DNA of 64,000 bases. Origin: Phaeosaccion multiseriatum (lineage: Eukaryota; Protista; Ochrophyta, other classes). The DNA lies in assembly GCA_965112735.1 (NCBI GenBank), contig OZ218952.1:496001-560000 (forward strand), written 5' to 3'. The translations under genes and the position numbers were made by a program. This document shows, in pieces, positions 1-15,519 of this stretch. How positions within the stretch are numbered: the stretch's first letter is position 1; every line of letters starts with the position of its first letter. The notes under the pieces are model-generated. The model ran no database searches, was not told the DNA's origin, and saw only the letters and a program-made list of their open reading frames with translations.

Positions 1-818
1 GCAAGCGCGTCCGGGAAAAGGCCTTGAGAAAGGAAGATTTGGATTCGAGTTCTTCGAGAGGGAACCGGGCAGATCTTCAGCAGCAGGAGCGGCCGCCACC
101 GCCACAGCTCGTGCTGCTGGAAAGTCACAGGCAGAATAGCCTCCCGGCCTTTTATTCACTCCTTAGGCGGCTGGGTGTGGGGATATGAGAAGGAGGAGGA
201 CATAACACCCCCCCCCCCCCCCTTTACTTTATTGGATGGCACTTCGCGGCACTGCCCTCTGCCCTGTCCGATCCCTGTCCCCTGTCGGCTCCCCGCAGGG
301 GCGGCTTCTCGGGCTCCTGGCTTCTGGGCCATAGCCCCCTCCAGGCTTCGGGCTTCTGGCCGCAGGCCAGCGCGGACTTCTGCGCCGCAGGCCAGCGGTC
401 TGGGCTTCAGGCTTCTCAGGGGGGCTCAGGGGGGGGGGGTGAGGAGAGATTATGCAGGCTTCTGGCCGCAGGCCAGCCCCGGGCTTGTTGCTTTCGGCCG
501 CAGGCCGCCTCAGGCTTCTGCTTATTGGGGGGGCAGAGAAGCCCTGGCTGCGGGATGCGGGGAGCCGATGCCCTGGGCTTCTCTTCCCTTGCACAGCAGA
601 GCTGTGCTTCATGAGACGTGAACAAAATTGAATAAAGTTACTAACTACTTGATCGCTTTGCTATCCTGTCCTTCCCCAAAATCACAGGTCCTTCGGTTTG
701 CACAACCTTGTTGTACCCTCTGTAGGCACGCTCTCCTCCCCCCCCCCCTCCTGACCCGTTCCATCGAGCGCCTCGCGCCTCAATGAGCCTAGCTACGTTA
801 TGCCCCGTTGACACTTGG

Positions 819-2246
819 CTAGCCCTGCTGTCCCTCCGCCATGGCGGCCATACGTTTCAACAAACCGGGCAGAGCCTCGTTGACGGGTTGGAGGGTGGGA
901 CCGTGGTCGACGGCCAGGTTGCTGCCCTGCGGCCATTTGCTGCCATCGGAGTCGGAGTGAAGGATCAACACGCCCTCGGCGAAGTCTACCCCCGTCCCGA
1001 CCTGAGTCCATTGAATGTTGGAAGCATACGAGCGAGGCCCACCGCACGCCGTGGAGAGCAAAAGACAAGGAGGGAGGGGGGGCGTGTCAGACAGAGGGAG
1101 AGTGAGGGCGCGAGGGGGAGGGAGAAGAGAGAAGAGAAGGCTAGACTGGTAAGATACCAAAAAGAGGCAGGAATCCAACACGGCCGGTGCGCTCGCCACA
1201 GTGCTATTCTTCCTCTCCTTCTCACCTTGCCCGAGGGATTCAACGCACCCGCAAGGCCTTCCAACGGGGCTCCCATCCCCTCCGCCGCCCGCTCGCCCAT
1301 TTCCGACTGGAAGGCGTACGGATTCAACGTGTAGGCTGCAAGGCAAAGCAAGGCAGGGCAAGAGGTAGAGCGAAGTGAACAAGGCGGTGTAGGGGGAGGT
1401 GAAGGGGCATGCTCCGAAGACGGGGGCCGTGCCAGTTCCACGCTCTGTCCAGTAACTCACCTCGGACGCCCTTGGGAGCCACCTCTGCTGCGTAACACCT
1501 CATGAAACCATCCACAGCGGCCTGAAGGTGATGGCCGAGCAATGGAAGCAAGAAAGACGTGAGAAACAGATACGCTAAAACTACTTCGTCGCCGCCCCTC
1601 CTTCCTCCCCCCCCTATTCCTACGGCGGCTGCTGCTACTGTGATATCACACCTTGCTTGCAGCGTAGATCGACATGCCGGCCATCGGCGCGACCGCGGCG
1701 ATGGAGGAGGTGACGATGAACATCCCCTTGGTCTTCTCCAGGTGGGGCGTGGCCAGGAGAGCGGTCTGCATGACTGCCTTGACGTTGATACCGAATAGTT
1801 TGTCGTACTCTCCTGCCAGCTTTGCCGCATCATACGTCTCCAGTGGAGCTAATGCTTCCACCCCTGCGTTGGCAAGGACAATGTCGATGGATGGTCCCGC
1901 TGCCTCGAACAAGCTCGTGAGGTGTGTATCATTGGTCACGTCGCCCTGTACGAAAACGGCAGCGCCGCCCGCGCCTTCGATCTCTGAGACCACGGCCTTT
2001 CCCAGCTCCTCACGGCGGCCTGAGAAGATAACCTTGGCCCCCTCCTGTAGGCCAATGCCGCGTACCGATGGCGTGAGAAATTGGAGAAGGGGCAGCGGCA
2101 GGAAGGCAAGCTGCAAATCTTCTCCCTTCCAAATACCCAATGTGCCCCCTACTGTCTCTCACCTTTGCTAGATGGATGGCGGCAACTTTGCCGATGCCGC
2201 TCGTCGCACCAGTGATGATTACAGTCTTGCCTTCCAAGCGCGCCAT
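819..2246 (-). CDS. Short-chain dehydrogenase/reductase (SDR); 5 exons (2246-2163, 2044-1652, 1521-1461, 1335-1226, 1001-819)
   Basis: TGATSGIG Rossmann motif, NAG motif (LANAG), catalytic S...YxxxK (TSS...YAASK); GT-AG introns join the ORF pieces in frame. Confidence 0.92.
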
Positions 2247-2473
2247 GTTCTCCTCTGATACTGTTGTAGAAACTCTTGTGTGTTGTGAGCGATTGATAGG
2301 GGGGAACAGGTGGGATATTTATCGGGTTAATAATCGGGGGGGGGGGGGGCGGGGTGGGACGTTCCCACACGTGCGCAAAAACGAAACTGAAACTACAGTT
2401 TCCTTTCCTTTTTCCTTTTTCTTTTTACAAAAAGGAGAAGAGAAAAAAATTCTTCTCCCACAAAGAAGCGTCC

Positions 2474-6270
<3,797 letters not shown>

Positions 6271-6689
6271 GCACTGTACACACTTGAGAATGGAGCAATT
6301 CTCTCCGAATCTCCGCGTCGAGATCGCTGTGTGGCAGGAGAGGGGAGGGGGGTGGCTGGAGGGGGGGGGGAAGGGGAGGGGGGAGGGGCAGGAAGCTAAG
6401 CCGTGGAGGGGAAATACTGGTGCGGTCCAGATTAGTTTCTCAGGGGCGGGGTGGATGGGAGGATGGGCTTGAACTTTGGGCTTGAGCTTCTTTGCTGGCC
6501 CATGTGTTGTAAGTCATTGGCTTGGCAGGCCTCAGGAGGTAAACCTAACTGACTCCCTGCTGCTGTACACATGGGGAGATCAGAAGTAGAGTAGAGTAGC
6601 TCAAGAGAGAGAGAGAGCTATCCGAGATATGCAGCAACATGAGAGCAGAGCGGTGTGGATGGACATAGGTATAATTACATAGGTACCTG

Positions 6690-6870
6690 GATAGGTAGGT
6701 AGGTAGGTAGGTAGGTAGGTAGGTAGGTAGGTAGGTAGATAGGTAGGTAGGTAGGGAGGTAGGGAGGGAGGTAGGTAGGGAGGTAGGAAGGTAGGAAGGT
6801 AGGTAGGTAGGTAGGAAGGTAGGTAGGTAGGTAGGTAGGTAGGTGGGTAGGTAGGTAGGTAGGTAGGTAG
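6690..6870 (+). repeat. (TAGG)n tetranucleotide microsatellite
   Basis: Imperfect aggt/tagg run. Confidence 0.9.
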
Positions 6871-6957
6871 GGGGCGTCGCAAAGTTAATTTATTTAGGAT
6901 AGGTTTTGGGGACGGAGAAAACAGCAGCAGCTGATCCCTAAAGATTCGACCCCTGAC

Positions 6958-7105
6958 GTGCTATTATGCTATCTGCTATCGCCGGCGCCAGCCGGCGTGC
7001 TATCTGCTATTGCCGGCGCCAGCCGGCGTGCTATGTGCTATCGCCGGCGCCAGCCGGCGTGCTATGTGCTATCGCCGGCGCCAGCCGGCGTTTTGTGCTA
7101 TTCGC
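6958..7105 (+). repeat. Left subterminal repeats of the transposon (TGCTAT-rich unit TGCTATCGCCGGCGCCAGCCGGCG, ~4 copies)
   Basis: Tandem ~31-bp units overlapping and following the left TIR. Confidence 0.85.
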
Positions 7106-7355
7106 CCCCCCGGGGTCGGGGGTGGGAGGGTGCGCGTGCGGGGGGCTAGGAGCGGAGGAAGCAACTCACACGTGTTTCATTGCCATTAATTCGCGTCAGT
7201 TCTTGTATAGTATGCCTAAGGGAGTATATCAAGGTCCACCCTCTGCCTGGCCTGGCTGACCTGCTGCCCGTGCACCCCTACCTCTCCGCCCTGTGATTGA
7301 CTGGCTCTCCGCTAGCTCAGCCGGCGGACGGCCCGATCGACATTGTGCTCGCCAA

Positions 7356-10300
7356 TCAGTCACTTTTACCACTAGGGCAGGCAGCATTCACTCCGTCACA
7401 ATACCAGTCCCCTTCAGGAAGCGTAGAGAGGGGAGGGGTCAGGCAGTACGTGTGAAACTCCTCATCGCAGCCGTCACATAGCAACATTTTGTCGTGGTCA
7501 ACATCTTTCTGACAGACTAGACATGCAGTGGCTTCGCTGGAGCTAGAGTCTGCTGCTTTTGCCGTGCCACGAGACAAAGCCCCATAACTCTCGGGCTTGT
7601 TTACCGTGCGCCCACGTGAGGACATCGCCCCCACCACCTTTCCGATGATGTTCTTGCGCAGTGTTCTCAGGTTCAGCGCCTCCTGCTCGCCATCACTGCT
7701 ATCGTCCTCAGACATGTCCTCTCCCATGTGCACGCTTGGGTCGGGGGGGCGTATCCCATCGCCTTGGCCACCTCTTGGCCCTCCGCCTCTCTGTTGACAA
7801 TCTGCTTGCACTCCTCGTGCTGCTCCTCCGTGATGGCAAACCTCCGAAGCCTTCTCTGCGCGCACACCCCTCCTGAAGCTGCATGTGAGCCTTCGATGTA
7901 CATTGCTTCGTGGTAGCGGGGCAATGCGCCATAAATGGCAGCACAAGACACAGAAGCCTCTTTCCCGCCGTCGACTTCGTAGACGACTGCTGCAGCCCCA
8001 TCCCCGTCCTGGGACTCGTCGGTAGAGTCCTGTTCAGCGACGTGAAAGTATGAAACACCAGGCTTTGCCGGAACCACCTTCTGCTTGGAGCCTCGTCCCT
8101 TCTTCGAGACGATCACCTCCTTCCGAAGATCGACGCGAAGCTGTGCAAGAAAAAAGCTCTCCTCCGACCCCTTGTCTGCCCTGACTATCACAACGTCATT
8201 TGCCCTGTAGAGAATGCGAGTTCGGACGGATTCACCGGTCTTCCGTCCTTTCTGTCCGCGCTTCCTCGCTCCCGAGCTCTCATGCAAGCGCGACAGGTAT
8301 CCACTCGGGTCGTTGCTTTGCGCAGAGTTGGGAGCAAACGCCACCGAACGCGGGGCCGCTCCAACATTGTACTTCCTCTTGTTGGTTACACGCTGCTGCG
8401 GAACCTTCCTAAGACGAGCCGCCGCATTGCGAAGCGTCTGCGTGTCCTTCTTGCGCTGCTTCCGTTGCCCTTCGTCAAGCTTCTCCGCTACCCTTGGTCG
8501 CTTCAACACGGGTGAAGCCACCAATCTGCTCTCGTTTTGCTCCAGCTGGTATCCCGCCCTGAGCTTTCGACCGCTGCTGTTGACGCTGCTTGTGCAGTAG
8601 GCAAAACCCATGCTGGGGTTGGCCTTCTTCGCAGCCTCAAGCATCACAAGGCCCCTTCTTCGGGCATACTCAAGAGCGTCTGGAACATCCTGGCGGCCTT
8701 CCCTTTGCTTCGTGAAGAAAGTCTCAACATTGAGGGTCAAAACGCTCCTCATCTGCATCTTCTCCACGATGCCGCGAGGCACTCCCTGCTGACGGAAATG
8801 AGCGAGGAAGCATCAAGCAAGGAGCGAACAGCGAAGCCGTGAGACGAAAGGGCAAGGCTGATTTCCAAACGCACGCGCCCACGGACACGGACATTTTTAC
8901 TCACGCACTCACGCACACACACGCACACAGCCATGGGGAGCACCCCCCTTCTCACCTCTGCAAGCATCCGATGTAGCATCCGAGGTAGTGCCTGCAGGCT
9001 CGCCTTGATAGCACCTCGAACTTCGCGTGATGGCATTCCTTCAGGGCCCTGGAGAGAGACCAGGGATTTGCCTGTGGCAGCTGATATCGCTTTCCCCATG
9101 TGACTGAGAGCCAAGTCGACCACATGAAGCTTGGCAATGCTCTCCTCCATCGTGCGTGCGTTGTTTTGCATGTCTTTGCCATTCTCATCCAAGTCTTCGC
9201 CCTGGAGCTGATACGCCTCACTCAACATCCGTTGTAGTGGGATGAGGTGCTGGGCGTAGACGTAGCAGTCCGAGATCATTCGAATGCACTGGTTTCCAGT
9301 GTCGGACAAGAAGAAAACGTTGTACACGAAGCAGCCGAACGTAGGTCTGAACAAAGGTACTTTCGATGCCGTACCGCTGGCAGTGCTCTCTCCGGGTTCT
9401 GTGTTTCCCTGTCCGCCCATCAGCACGGATGATCCCTTCCAGCTTAGCACCCCACTGTCACGACGAAGGAGAACCTTGACAAGCGCATGCAAACCTTCAT
9501 CTAGCATGAGGATGACGATCATATCTTCATCATCGTATGCACCGGGTGGGGCCAACGTGAGTCCACAAGGCTGAGTCCCCACGTGAGACTTCACGCACGT
9601 GAGGTGTGCGCGCCTTGGCTTCTCAACAGTACCATCTTCCTCGTCATCAGTCAGAGCCATGAGTGTATCTCCGTCATTGCCACTGCCACCCTCTGGTCCT
9701 CCGGCACGTTCCACATTGCCCTCCCAGACAAAAAGCGAGCTGTCGGCGATGCAGGCAACGCAGTCATGCGAGAGTGCTGTGAGGCCCGCAGGTCCCTTGG
9801 GTAGGTCACACAGCTTCTCGCTCACAGGTGCAAAAGGGTTGCCAGCGTCAAATGAGAGCCGGTGTAGTGCTCCCCCCGCCAGGTTCCTCTTGGGTGACAA
9901 AGAGGTCGAACGCGCGCTCAGAGGACACGGCAAGCGCAATGGCAACGGGGCAACGGATGCCCTCCTCTTCTCTCTCCTCGAGGACATTCTCCTCAGAAGT
10001 GCAACGCTCCTGGATCCGACGGACCAAGGGCACTGCCTTCAAATTCAAATGCCGTTGCTGAGTCTGTCTCCCCCGACCACGCGCTGCTACATGCCCGTCC
10101 GGTTGCTGGTCGTCGTCATCATCATCGTCGCCCTCCTCCGCCGCCGCGCGGGGTCCCCTGTTTCCTGGAAGAGCGGCCAGCACATGCACCACCCAAATCT
10201 GATTCGCTCCACTGTCACACATGTACACGTAGTCGCCAACCACGACGAGAGACCCAAGACTCTGGAAGCAGTCGTCTCGCAGAACAACCTCTGTGGTACA

Positions 10301-12108
10301 AGGCACATGATGGGCCTTGAGCATGCGCAGATGCCTGCCTGAACGATCGGCGTTGAAGATCATGCCAGAGCCATGATGGTAGCCCATACCAGTCGGCTTC
10401 TGAGTCTGCGAGGCCATGTTCTGATGCCAGAAACCCCACGGCTCCGGGCACACGGTCACCCCCACGAGAGCACGGCGCTTCTCCCGCTCCTCCTCTGAGA
10501 GTAGAGCCAACTGCAGAGACGCCGTCGTAACAGCGATTGCGCTCTCCACTGAGAAAGGATCCTTGTTTTCAATGGCGTCAAGGCCAACATTGGCTTGTAC
10601 TGCTTCACTTCGAGCCGGGTCCAGATCGTGGAATCTGGCGCGAAGAGTTCGCAGTCCGACTAGCCAGCCCTGGCAGACGACCCACCAATTGAATGTCGTA
10701 GCACGAACACACTTTACAAGGTGAGCCCCGTCAGGCAGTGCCTCATACCACCCCAGGGGGTCGTCCTCTCCGAGGGTTCTTGCCGCCATTTTCCGAATGA
10801 AGGCAAGCTGTGCGCCATTACAGTCTGTTGAGATGCACAATGGTCGGAGACTCTTGCACACGAGCCCTTTCCTCTTGCACCTCGAGCAGACTCTGCTGGA
10901 GAACTGAGTCGCGCAAACGCACTCACTTTCACCGCAAGGACCCTCCCCTCCGGTGGGACAAGCTTGGTGGCAATCACACGCCTCGCCCATCTCCACCCAC
11001 GAGGGGTTCTCCCCCGTCAGAATCCGCTGCCAGAAAAGCTCGAGACAAGGGATGCAAACACGCAGCGCCTTCATGATTTCGGTCACGCTCGCGGCAACAC
11101 TTTTGTAGTCACCCCCTGCGGTGTGAAGCTGAAAACCGATGGAGCCCGTGTATGCCCCTTTCAGATCCATCATCATAACTTCCATCATCTCGGAACCCAG
11201 CTTAGGTGCGTCCTCGTCTCGCAGCTGGAACAGAACGAGTAGCGATAAGGGAGGGTTGACAGGAGGCGAAGCAAAGGCGGGGCTGCAGCGTGAGCGAGCG
11301 AGCGAGGAGGCGTGATTAAGATTGACGATGGATCAACAGTGATTCTGCCCCGAAAGATCAGTGGGAAGGAGGGGACGCCACGCACCTGAGCATCAGACTT
11401 TTCCAGTATTGCCTTCGCCTGCTCCAGTGTTGTATTTCCAAACTGATGTGCATTGCCCCAATTGGTTTGGCTGGTTGTATCAGTATGATGGCCCTTGGCA
11501 ATGACGAAGCCATCCATTTTGACAGTCACGGGAACCACAATCTTCTCGTTGCCTTTGTCGCCAAGAGTGTAGGCTTGGTCGGCACAGAAGCGGGCGAAGA
11601 CATTGACGACGTTGATAATGTCTTCGACTTGCAGACCGTACCTCTTGATTAGGCCAGGCCTGCGCCTAATGAGTGCTCTCGGATGAAAGCCGCCTGTGTT
11701 CGCCCTGCGGAAGTAGTCCTTCATGGCCTGGTCCCTGGAGACGTTGGGGCCACGAACCTTCTTTCTGCGGGGTGCCCCATAGGAGAGCATGGAGCATGCT
11801 GAACCAAATACGTTCTGCTGGGTCTCATTAAACTGTCGCAGCGTCTCGTAGCCATTGAGCTGCTTGCTCGCGGCCACAGTCTGACGCCTGGACCAAAGGC
11901 CGCTGTTCATGACCCAACGATGCACCGTTTGATACATGAAGTGACTCCGAGTAAAGTGCCCTCGATCAAGATGGAATTGGATCGCAAAGGGAACAATGTC
12001 GACATCGTTTACGTCCCGGGTAAGCTCTACACGCCCGCTGTCCGCGTCTTCCGTCACAGCCACCCGCCCATGGTCTTCTTCTGTCGCGGACGAGCCCGCG
12101 GCGCCCAT
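7356..12108 (-). CDS. P-element-like DDE transposase with Cys-rich insert, NHL-like beta-propeller, BAH-like region and C-terminal PHD finger; introns 11385-11225 and ~8957-8787; two apparent homopolymer frameshifts (~9875, ~7746)
   Basis: Motifs in P/THAP9 order: VKMDGFVIAKG (D1), LGSEMMEVMMMDL, ISTDCNGAQ (D2), LPDGAHLVKCVR (DxxH), LNVETFFTKQR (E). PHD: CLVC..LLCDGCDEEFHTYCLTPPL..PEGDWYC. Start codon inferred. Confidence 0.75.
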
Positions 12109-12204
12109 CGCCTTTGTTTGTGGCCAAATGTGAAACGGCAGAATCTTTATTGGCTTACAGCTGGCTGGGCCCATGGCTGGGCCCCACTGGTTCAAAAGTC
12201 CTTC

Positions 12205-15011
12205 ATGTCTGGCCGCGATGGAGGGAGGAGTTGGGGGGGGGGGGGCGACTACTACAACAGCAGGAGAGGCACGCCAAGTCCAGTTGGCAGCAGGAGTCGG
12301 AGCCGGGAGAAGGCCCCTGAGAGGGCGAGGAGAGGGAGGAGTGCCAGCAGGAGTTGGAGCAGGGAGAAGCACAGTGAGAGGAGGAAGCGAGGGAGAAATG
12401 CCAGCAGGAGTCAGAGTAGGGGGAAGGACACCGAGAGGAGGAGGGCAGGGAGAAGTACCAGCAGGAGTCGGAGCCGACCCAGATCCGGAGGAGGAGGAGG
12501 GAGGAGGGAAGGAGAAAAGGGTCGAAGCAAAGGGAGACGGGGCCGCAGTCCCAGCGAAAGAGGATTCCCAGCAGGCGCGAGGAAAATGCGTCGGAACCAA
12601 AGTCCCAGCGACAGGGGAGTACGCCGAAGCAGCCATTCACAACACGCTTCTCACGAGCTGGGGTGGGAGGAGGGGGGGCGGCTTGAGGACACCTATCTCC
12701 AGAGTACGGCAACCTTGGCATCGTCTTCTGAGGCACAAGACTTCGATTATGCCTTGCCCCTGAGTGCAGGGATGGGACAGGCAAAACCTACCCCTCTCAT
12801 GTTCGCGCATGTGGGGACATTTCCAAGAGGATGCCTCAACCCCGTCGAGGCTGATTTCAGTCTCGGCACATCGGTGTCCTGCAACACGACCGAGCTCTTC
12901 GAGACCTTGCCCTACACGTTCCAGCTGGCTAATGAAGACAAGCGATTCTCCAGCTTCAAGGCCTTCCGTGGACATTTGACCAGCGAATTGCTCTTTCAGA
13001 CGGAACAAAAGAAGAACGACATCACGATCAGAGCCTCCACGGCATTCAGACGTGGCAGAGGGTTGGATACAATCCGCGACGACGTCTCCCTGCGCCGCGT
13101 GGTACGTGTCGGGTACAACTGCCTCTCGATGTTTGTGCATTGTCTGCTACGGCAGCAACCCTTTCTTAAACCCGCCCCCCCCCGCCCCTCTCTGTCTCTT
13201 TCTCCAACACACACCCAATACAGGTGCGCTCGTTCTACACTTTCCCTCCGGGCCGTATCGATCCCGACAAACGGTGGAGACTGGATCTGTACTGCGAGCT
13301 ACGCCCGAAATCAGGGGCGAGACAGCAGGAGAACGTGCAAATTTGCCTGTCTTTCCCTACCCAATCTCTGGACAGCGCCACAGATTTTTCGACCCATACC
13401 CCACCCAAGAAGGCAGGTCATCGAGGTGGTGCTGCCCGTGTCAGTGAGACCACCAGTGATAGTGAGGGAGAGAGTGCCGGCGGGACGAAAGGCGGGAAGG
13501 CGGGGCAAGAGGGGGCACTGACGAAGAAGGCGAAGAGCTGGCTCCACGCGCAAGGAACCAAGTTCTTTTATCTTTTGCGGGAAATGCCTGATGTGGAGAT
13601 GCAAACTCTCAGCGGAAGCAAGGTCGGTGATGCAGCAAGCTTCGTGAAGATCCATACGCCAGCTTTGATTCAGCTTGAGGCCAAAGCGAACTTCTCCATC
13701 AGACACGCCAGAACATCATTGGATATGCTGGTATCTGTTGTGTGCACCAGGCCTGCTTGTCAGAGCGCCGGGAAGGGCAAGTACAAGCCTCAGTGGACTC
13801 ATTTGTCTGGCGTTAAGCGCCACAGAGACTCCCACTCATCGAGCGGTCAGAAAAGCATGCAAGCTGCACTCTCTCACTTCCTACTGAAGACGGCGTTGGG
13901 GAAGCAGGAGGAGGAGGAGCAGGAGGAGGAGGAGGAGGAGGAGGATGATGGTGGTGGTGATGATGATGATGAGGAGGAGGAGGAGGAGGAGGAGGAGGAG
14001 GAGCAGGAGGGGGGGGAGGAGGAGGAGCAGGAGGAGGAGGAGGAGGAGGAGCAGGAGGGGGGCAGCAGCCCTTCTTCCCACCAGAAGAAAAGCAGGGCCA
14101 TGCCTGCGGCACAATCAGTGGCCGAAGCTGAGCAGCTGACAGGGGACATGAAGGCGAGGCTGCTTGTCCTCGGCGCTGAGCAGGACATGCACAAGGAAAA
14201 GGGGGAGTACACCTCCTTCTTTTTGGACGCGATGATGACCACTGTATCCGTGAACGGAAACAGGGCACTACTCCCGTGCGCGTCTCTTGGTCACATTTTC
14301 AACCCAGCTGTGGAGAACTCCCCCATGCCCAACGTGTTGGCGACGGCTCCGAAAGGGTTCCTGCCGAAAGGTTACAGGGAGTCTGGTCTTACAATGACGA
14401 AGTGTGAGCTCCTCGTCCTCCCTGCGAGTTTCAGCGGCCATTTCTCGACTGTCGCTGTCCTTCTACCTACCTCTGCAGCTAGTGACGACGGGGAGGGTGC
14501 TATGGCGTACATTCTGCACTTTGATACGGTCCGAAATGGGCGCCTCGGTCACCACCCTTCGAAGCGAGTGCTCCAAGCGACGCAGGTGTATGTGGAGAAG
14601 GTCATGGAGGACGAAAGAGCCCCTGGGACGGCAGCCCTCCGATTCCGGCAGGTCTTTGTTGGTGTGCCACAGCAGAAGGCCGGCTCGAATTCTTGCGGTC
14701 CGGCAACAGCTCTATTCATGTCGAAATTGGCTGTGGCAGACACCAGCCCCGTGCGCAAAGTGCTCTATGGTGTTGAGCAAGACAACAGCTGGGAAAGGGA
14801 CGACGGTGTAGCGATTTTGTCTAGTGCGGCGGGGGCAAAGAAGGAGACCGTGGACCGCTTCTTGGCCGCGTGTGGGCTGCCGTGTCTGACCTGCGAAGAG
14901 TATGAGGCAGAGAGAACTCGCCTCTTTCGGGCGTACCTGAGCTCCGGGATGCGCAACGGTTCCTTGCCCGACGTTTACAACTCGGCCTTGCATAAGTGCG
15001 TCCTGGGTTAG
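12205..15011 (+). CDS. Transposon accessory gene: RS-rich N-terminus, CxxxxC..HxxxH zinc-finger-like motif, acidic tract, C-terminal Ulp1/SENP (C48)-like cysteine protease; intron ~13102-13223
   Basis: Catalytic order H (LPASFSGHFS), D (YILHFDT), Q..C (VPQQKAGSNSCG) typical of Ulp1 peptidases; a GTACGT..CAG intron joins the 11920 and 13224 ORFs in frame. Confidence 0.8.
12288..12476 (+). repeat. Three-plus copies of a 57-bp coding tandem repeat (19-aa RS-rich unit)
   Basis: Units begin CAGCAGGAGT at 12288, 12345, 12402 and 12459. Confidence 0.8.
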
Positions 15012-15182: not shown

Positions 15183-15310
15183 GTCTGCTATCGCCGGCGC
15201 GACGGGGCGTGCTATCTGCTATTCGCCGGCGCCAGCCGGCGTGCTATCTGCTATTCGCCGAGTGCAAATAGCATGCTATTGGGCGCCGGGGCGCCCAATA
15301 GCATGCTATC
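15183..15310. repeat. Right subterminal TGCTAT repeats and hairpin (ATAGCATGCTATTGGGCGCC-GG-GGCGCCCAATAGCATGCTAT)
   Basis: Same unit as the left end, in direct orientation, followed by a ~20-bp-stem palindrome at ~15268-15309. Confidence 0.8.
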
Positions 15311-15519
15311 GCAGATAGCATAATAGCACGTCAGGGGTCGATAAAGATGGGAGAGCGGTGGGGAGAGTTGAGTACTTCGTCGCCCATCAATGGAAGGCAT
15401 TGCAGGGGAGCGAATGTAACAAGTCGAGCAGCTGTAGCCCTATTGGAGGGGAGGGAGGGGAGACAGTGCGAGGGGGGGTCTTCTCCCTTCCTTCTCCAAG
15501 GGTATCTAATATTTTTTAA

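Follow-up and report, generated by a model that had tools for sequence, protein, structure and literature searches.

An NHL-type beta-propeller within the insertion domain of a predicted family of DDE cut-and-paste transposases

A DNA transposon in the ochrophyte Phaeosaccion multiseriatum carries a transposase gene on the minus strand, which runs from ~12.1 kb to 7.36 kb as one long coding region spread over several frames. All coordinates refer to the 64,000-nt stretch of contig OZ218952.1 (assembly GCA_965112735.1) that was analysed here as a whole, and which we call the window. Segment 10432..9253 (-) of the gene very probably codes for a six-bladed NHL-type beta-propeller, nested within the insertion domain of a DDE (Asp-Asp-Glu) cut-and-paste transposase as an integral and conserved part of the enzyme. 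The initial annotation of this DNA had proposed an NHL-like propeller at 9240-10430 based on a series of repeated motifs. All of these motifs are indeed found on the minus strand (QKPTGMGY, YVYMCDSGANQIWVV, RCPVAIAL, GPAGLTAL, QPCGLTL and FRPTFGC..FFLSDTGNQCIRMI) and the limits given were accurate within ~15 nt. The propeller identity is borne out by profile matches at E ~1e-25 and by the fold of homologues, and the repeat pattern is far beyond chance.

The profile for the propeller interval was constructed from 25 homologues with the window rows removed. Pieces of the window were searched separately, and were joined, with X at the breaks, only for alignment display. Two adjoining pieces in different frames match this profile, and window residues align to nearly every strand of the propeller model of P0003, the closest complete relative. 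The approximate blades in Table 1 follow from this strand-by-strand map. Profiles for the catalytic regions upstream and downstream of the propeller likewise match the flanking pieces. The call for a 'frameshift-corrected' protein in the initial annotation can be traced to a change of reading frame at 9877-9872, within blade 3: frame 0 reads ..FDLFVTQEEPGGG and frame 1 goes on with ALHRLSFDAGNPF, the propeller profile passes from position 162 to 166, skipping three positions, and the homologues are uninterrupted at this site. Two acidic low-complexity loops separate blades 2 and 3 and blades 4 and 5, and the first of them falls where each of the two AlphaFold models described below has a loop of low confidence.

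The propeller is a constant feature of the family. An exhaustive HMMER search with the 458-residue exon-2 piece (11224-9851) identified 90 relatives with E values no higher than 1e-3. The best is 44% identical, and all are labelled hypothetical, uncharacterized or unnamed in their sources. Each of the ~27 long homologues retains 300-390 residues in the propeller interval, including XP_014674326.1 (P0037) from the priapulid Priapulus caudatus. In BLASTP comparisons, window pieces B, C, D and E are collinear inside single proteins such as P0003 and P0004, both of which also end in a PHD finger. P0003 is encoded by one unbroken open reading frame (ORF) of 1,072 codons on a metagenomic contig (L001:3543-6761), which unites the second catalytic Asp, the propeller, the catalytic Glu and the PHD finger without interruption; the ORF upstream of it on the same contig matches window exon 1. 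A few family members show weak BED or SAP matches.

Support for the NHL fold comes from both sequence profiles and predicted structures. When searched against the PDB, the family profile (alignment A1, 27 rows) matches the PknD sensor domain and the Pizza proteins designed from it (E 6e-37 to 3.5e-17), as well as SOQ1 (1.5e-22), NHLRC2 (4.9e-22), TRIM71 (4e-14) and the group of Thin, TRIM2/3 and Brat (2e-10 to 1e-7). The Pfam NHL model scores above its gathering threshold in P0015 (38.5 bits), P0049 and P0002, and is seen in 6/35 members at E up to 0.05. An AlphaFold model of the propeller interval of P0003 (residues 130-480) is all-beta with 25 strands, with a mean predicted local distance difference test (pLDDT) value of 86.6 and a predicted template modelling (pTM) score of 0.86, and six-bladed NHL-type propellers rank first when it is used as a Foldseek query. 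A larger model, spanning residues 100-1060 of P0005 (961 residues; pLDDT 88.2, pTM 0.87), has an NHL-like domain at residues ~420-750. Foldseek and ESM Atlas agree on this point, and this part of the model superposes on the NHL domains of TRIM71 (30.6, 2.5 A, 252), SOQ1 (30.4, 2.5 A, 265), LIN-41 (30.4, 2.5 A, 256), NHLRC2 (30.0, 2.5 A, 265) and PknD (29.3, 2.5 A, 248). The domain is modelled as a closed propeller of six four-stranded blades, and its sequence profile is also of the NHL type.

The location of the propeller is best understood by reference to P transposase, where the catalytic triad is D230, D303 and E531 and the insertion between beta5 and alpha4 is an almost entirely helical GTP-binding domain (PMC7776569, PMC8230255), as the initial annotation had noted. 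In DmTNP, D339 of the D(2)H motif forms the insertion-domain boundary (PMC8230255). The window family has three invariant acidic residues that would constitute the triad (Table 1), and both the DxxH motif (DGAH, 10732-10721) and the Glu (8725-8723) sit where they had been placed earlier. The family profile aligns the second-Asp column with the D303 region of P transposase structure 6p5a, a weak match at E 0.52, and aligns DGAHLVK with SDtPHLiKlvRN of the same structure, so that a D(2)H motif stands at the start of the insertion here as well. In the P0005 model, the first Asp is on a long strand (117-130), the second Asp follows directly after strand 301-311 and the DxxH motif directly after strand 328-331. 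A hairpin and helices (333-420), the propeller (~421-750) and further helices (750-860) come next, and the Glu lies on a helix at residue 864. As modelled, the catalytic order is beta1, beta4, beta5, insertion and alpha4, as in RNase H-type transposases. Within the insertion interval, ~95 residues (hairpin and helices) precede the propeller and ~110 helical residues follow it. Because these ~200 mostly helical residues flank it, the propeller is a nested part of the insertion and not a substitute for it; of the two options raised initially, that a propeller might supplement or replace the helical insertion, only the former agrees with the retention of the flanking helices. A cluster of cysteines is located between the first and second Asp. 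We note that part of this cluster gave a chance-level match in the PDB to a fungal Zn2Cys6-type transcription factor, which is not significant (E above 6).

The gene belongs to an element of 8,396 bp, which we assign as a cut-and-paste DNA transposon because it has 37-nt inverted ends and a 7-bp target duplication. The perfect target-site duplication, TAAAGAT, is found at 6939-6945 and 15342-15348, flanking the inverted repeats. Within the transposase gene, exon 1 has candidate start codons (ATG) at 12174 and 12108 and the stop codon is at 7358-7356 (-). Two of the changes of frame in the gene are explained by predicted spliceosomal introns with clean splice signals. The upstream profile runs on across intron 1 (positions 216 to 224), and downstream profile positions 91 and 92 are contiguous across intron 2. 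The PHD finger is the sole Pfam match among all window pieces at E up to 10. Window pieces D and E, which lie on either side of the second frame break, are collinear with P0003 and P0004.

Table 1. Positions in the window of the transposon ends, transposase gene features and profile matches.
Feature	Position	Strand	Remarks
Left terminal inverted repeat	6946..6982		37 nt; 95% complementary to 15305-15341
Right terminal inverted repeat	15305..15341		37 nt
Transposase exon 1	11386..12108	-	N-terminal helices and first catalytic Asp; start codon uncertain
First catalytic Asp	codon 11514-11512	-	VKMDGF; invariant, 31/31 sequences
Intron 1	11225..11385	-	Predicted; 161 nt, GT..AG, phase 0
Cysteine cluster	10856..11056	-	11 Cys; between first and second catalytic Asp; nine family Cys columns at least 90% conserved
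Second catalytic Asp	10823..10825	-	ISTDCNGAQ; invariant, 34/34
D-x-x-H-x-x-K motif	10712..10732	-	DGAHLVK; H 34/34, K 33/34, D 31/34; opens insertion interval
N-terminal insertion part	10433..10711	-	Hairpin and helices; motif D.D...R...R.......LR.KD...VE
Six-bladed NHL-type beta-propeller (predicted)	9253..10432	-	Window-free profile matches; strand-by-strand map onto P0003 model
Blades 1-3 (approximate)	10396-10280; 10258-10184 + 10036-10010; 9949-9802	-	
Blades 4-6 (approximate)	~9795-9589; 9570-9463; 9345-9274	-	
Acidic low-complexity loops	~10180-10040; ~9725-9610	-	Between blades 2/3 and blades 4/5
Frame break 1	9872..9877	-	Run of six G, inside blade 3
C-terminal helical insertion part	8956..9252	-	Conserved QGPEG.S..R; profile E 2e-9; model helices 750-860
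Intron 2	8789..8955	-	Predicted; 167 nt, GT..AG, phase 0
Catalytic Glu	8723..8725	-	LNVETFF; invariant, 22/22; on helix in model
Frame break 2	7743..7749	-	Run of seven C; between C-terminal region and acidic linker preceding PHD finger
C-terminal PHD finger	7398..7523	-	Pfam PHD, E 1.3e-12
Upstream catalytic profile	exon 1		Profile positions 20-216; E 5e-26
Upstream catalytic profile	exon 2		Profile positions 224-478; E 1e-66
Propeller profile	10432..9887, frame 0		Profile positions 2-162; E 1.4e-25
Propeller profile	9870..9253, frame 1		Profile positions 166-320; E 7e-26
Downstream profile	9258..8962, frame 1		Before intron 2; profile positions 2-91; E 2e-9
Downstream profile	8791..8420, frame 0		After intron 2; profile positions 92-203; E 6e-21

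Directly inside both inverted repeats are arrays of a 31-32-nt unit (TGCTATCTGCTATCGCCGGCGCCAGCCGGCG), at 6967-7106 (4-4.6 copies) and 15184-15279 (2.4-3 copies), in identical orientation at the two ends. These subterminal repeats are candidate transposase binding sites. The element has a second, divergently oriented ORF at 13224-15011 (+), which encodes 595 aa. Pfam searches of this ORF gave only acidic low-complexity matches and none to Peptidase_C48, and the segment ...QQKAGSNSCGP... in it could be a diverged catalytic Cys motif. The same head-to-head arrangement of two genes is seen on metagenomic contig L001 (GC 50%), at 520-2118 (-) and 2261-6761 (+); the accessory gene there encodes 532 aa with a C..C...H...H-like stretch and is unrelated to the second ORF of the window. 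A search for terminal inverted repeats in the homologue contigs L001 (7.7 kb) and L002 gave no clear element ends. In the stretch 12150-12640, a 57-nt tandem repeat (12288-12474) is open on both strands; its translation is rich in Pro when read on the transposase strand and in Arg and Ser when read on the plus strand (ORF 11920-13521). Because the minus-strand profile match begins only at ~12021, this stretch may be part of the plus-strand gene or of neither of the two. The window as a whole is rich in GC and eukaryotic, with a (TAGG)45 microsatellite at 6692-6871, ~70 bp beyond the left end of the element. There are no further copies of the element elsewhere in the 64-kb window, and an Rfam search of the window gave no match.

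Four points weigh against our assignment of a propeller nested in the transposase core. The Pfam NHL model matches none of the window's own pieces at E up to 10, so the NHL assignment rests on the family profile and the fold; the fold of the window protein is itself predicted from homologues with 24-43% identity; propeller matches took up every list obtained in fold searches with the 961-residue model; and a conserved basic face for binding DNA or RNA was sought on the propeller and rejected. Single-sequence PDB searches returned nothing, and the same was true of an ESM Atlas feature search with the catalytic part. A word-index protein search with piece B and the catalytic alignment gave nothing useful, being limited by length and candidate saturation, and another ESM Atlas feature search produced one weak NHL/SAP lead (0.80). 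An altogether different explanation would be that the propeller lies outside the functional transposase, either as a fragment captured from the host or as an exon that is separate or alternatively spliced. DNA transposons do capture host fragments, but we consider this very improbable: ~27 homologues of widely differing origin, Priapulus among them, have the propeller conserved at this position, it is included in the single unbroken ORF of L001, and both window introns are located outside it. Indeed, skipping the propeller exon would remove the active site, because that exon also holds the second Asp and the DxxH motif. A question on which we find the evidence evenly divided is whether the propeller at this particular locus is a relic, with both frame breaks real mutations, no full-length transposase produced and the element non-autonomous. 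There are no intron signals near 9877-9872 or 7749-7743; we looked for a short GT-AG intron at either break and found no usable sites, the sole candidate (37 nt) leaving a stop. The inverted repeats, at 95% complementarity, also fall short of 100%. On the other hand, both breaks occur in homopolymer runs, a typical site of assembly errors, the gene is otherwise open, with good scores against the family profiles, and the target-site duplication is perfect. Unless both breaks are assembly errors, this copy would be unable to make the full protein, and if they are real, it could move only with enzyme supplied by intact copies.

Based on sequence comparisons, the known superfamily closest to these transposases is probably P/THAP9, with formal membership unproven and the link a weak one. 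The upstream catalytic profile, searched against the 177,635 sequences of the PDB, has P transposase 6p5a as its top match, in an alignment that spans the second-Asp strand and the DxxHxxKxxRN string, and PF21787 (TNP-like RNase H N-terminal domain) is the sole transposase family matched, in 3/35 members, over the stretch with the first Asp (best E 1.9e-4). Hermes, RAG1, Transib and KDZ gave no matches in the Pfam search of members or the PDB profile search, and membership in KDZ/Zisupton was rejected, with PF18758 unmatched among the 35 members at E up to 0.05. These results favor an affinity to P over the alternative that the core lies outside the P superfamily. In that case the core would represent a DDE lineage of its own, so far undescribed, with only the widespread [C/D]xxH motif in common, and the parallel with the GTP-binding insertion would be positional analogy only. 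We view this alternative as the less likely of the two, yet several findings speak for it: 6p5a was matched only at E 0.52 and was not recovered with a divergent-subgroup profile; the PF21787 match, at 22.2 bits, is below the gathering score of 24.6; PF21788 (GBD), PF21789, PF12017 and THAP have no match in the window pieces or the 35 members; the core contains the conserved cysteine cluster; and the target duplication is 7 bp, as opposed to 8 bp for the P element (PMC7776569). The downstream (post-propeller) profile retrieved nothing from the PDB.

What might a propeller nested in the insertion domain do? An insertion domain at this site lies against both the active site and the transposon-target junction (PMC7776569), and the multi-domain model has a high pTM, which suggests that its parts are fixed relative to one another. 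The propeller core is approximately neutral, with a net charge of -12 to +7 across members and -6 in the window, and the columns conserved in it are structural ones (Pro, Gly, Asp, Leu and His), none of them basic; a nucleic-acid-binding face like that of TRIM71 or Brat is therefore not favored. Because RNase H-type transposases have their insertion domains packed beside the active site and the DNA junction, the propeller would most likely act as a rigid interaction platform that holds or positions a partner during transposition. The best single candidate for this partner, although short of an even chance, seems to us to be a protein or chromatin, engaged together with the PHD finger. Only slightly behind would be another transposase subunit, or transposon or target DNA within the synaptic complex, and a small ligand would be a distant third. 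It is also conceivable, if quite unlikely, that the family is a DDE lineage of superfamily rank in which the in-chain NHL propeller and PHD finger do for the transposase what RAG2 does for RAG1, namely chromatin reading and allosteric licensing of cleavage. If true, the propeller-plus-PHD logic on which V(D)J recombination is built would have been invented independently here, within a single polypeptide.

The insertion domains of RNase H-type transposases such as Tn5, Hermes, RAG1 and P shape DNA cutting and joining. Those described in the literature we examined are compact, with helices making up nearly all of the one in P. An entire NHL propeller at this place, with conservation that extends from algae to a priapulid, would represent a new architecture. 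It would also be a tractable system in which to study the role of a large interaction module beside a transposase active site. We found no description of an NHL propeller inside a transposase core in a full-text literature search, where only RAG papers surfaced, or in family libraries, and a broad DDE survey preprint makes no mention of one. The results also flag an unannotated 'hypothetical' protein family as transposon-derived, which matters for the annotation of protist and some animal genomes.

Comparison with known systems places these features in context. The window family resembles P transposase and THAP9 (6P5A; PF21787-PF21789) in having a putative DDE triad on a predicted split RNase H-like fold, a D(2)H-x-x-K motif that immediately follows beta5 and marks the start of a large insertion preceding the Glu helix, and a cut-and-paste element bounded by terminal inverted repeats, with a target duplication of 7-8 bp. 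It differs in the length of the insertion (~600 residues versus 190 in P transposase), in the complete NHL propeller nested between the helical segments, in showing no THAP or GTP-binding-domain signature, and in having a PHD finger at the C terminus as well as an extra, conserved cluster of cysteines between the first and second Asp. KDZ transposons are likewise eukaryotic DNA transposons whose large genes have several exons and encode cysteine clusters; their target duplications are 7-8 bp (PMC12730594) and they occur in algae and animals (PMC9297572). An NHL propeller is not mentioned in the KDZ literature examined.

The propeller itself shares with those of TRIM71/LIN-41, Brat, TRIM2/3, NHLRC2, SOQ1 and PknD the six four-stranded blades, the P-x-G and hydrophobic-x-D-x-x-N/G-x-x-[IV] blade motifs and an AGG...DG.A...P motif. 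Known NHL propellers are terminal modules, whereas the window propeller is embedded in the catalytic domain of an enzyme; it also has long acidic loops between blades 2/3 and 4/5 that the known propellers do not, and no conserved counterpart of the basic RNA-binding face of TRIM71 and Brat. The combination of a propeller and a PHD finger invites a natural comparison with the RAG1/RAG2 arrangement. RAG1/RAG2 and the related ProtoRAG/Transib systems likewise involve a DDE transposase working with a six-bladed propeller and a PHD finger, the latter two constituting RAG2 (PMC4411706). We regard this likeness as analogy only, and the PDB profile search showed no relationship in sequence to RAG1 or Transib. 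The RAG propeller is of the Kelch type and is located with its PHD finger on a separate protein, whereas the window propeller is of the NHL type and would lie in the same chain as the PHD finger, inside the catalytic domain.

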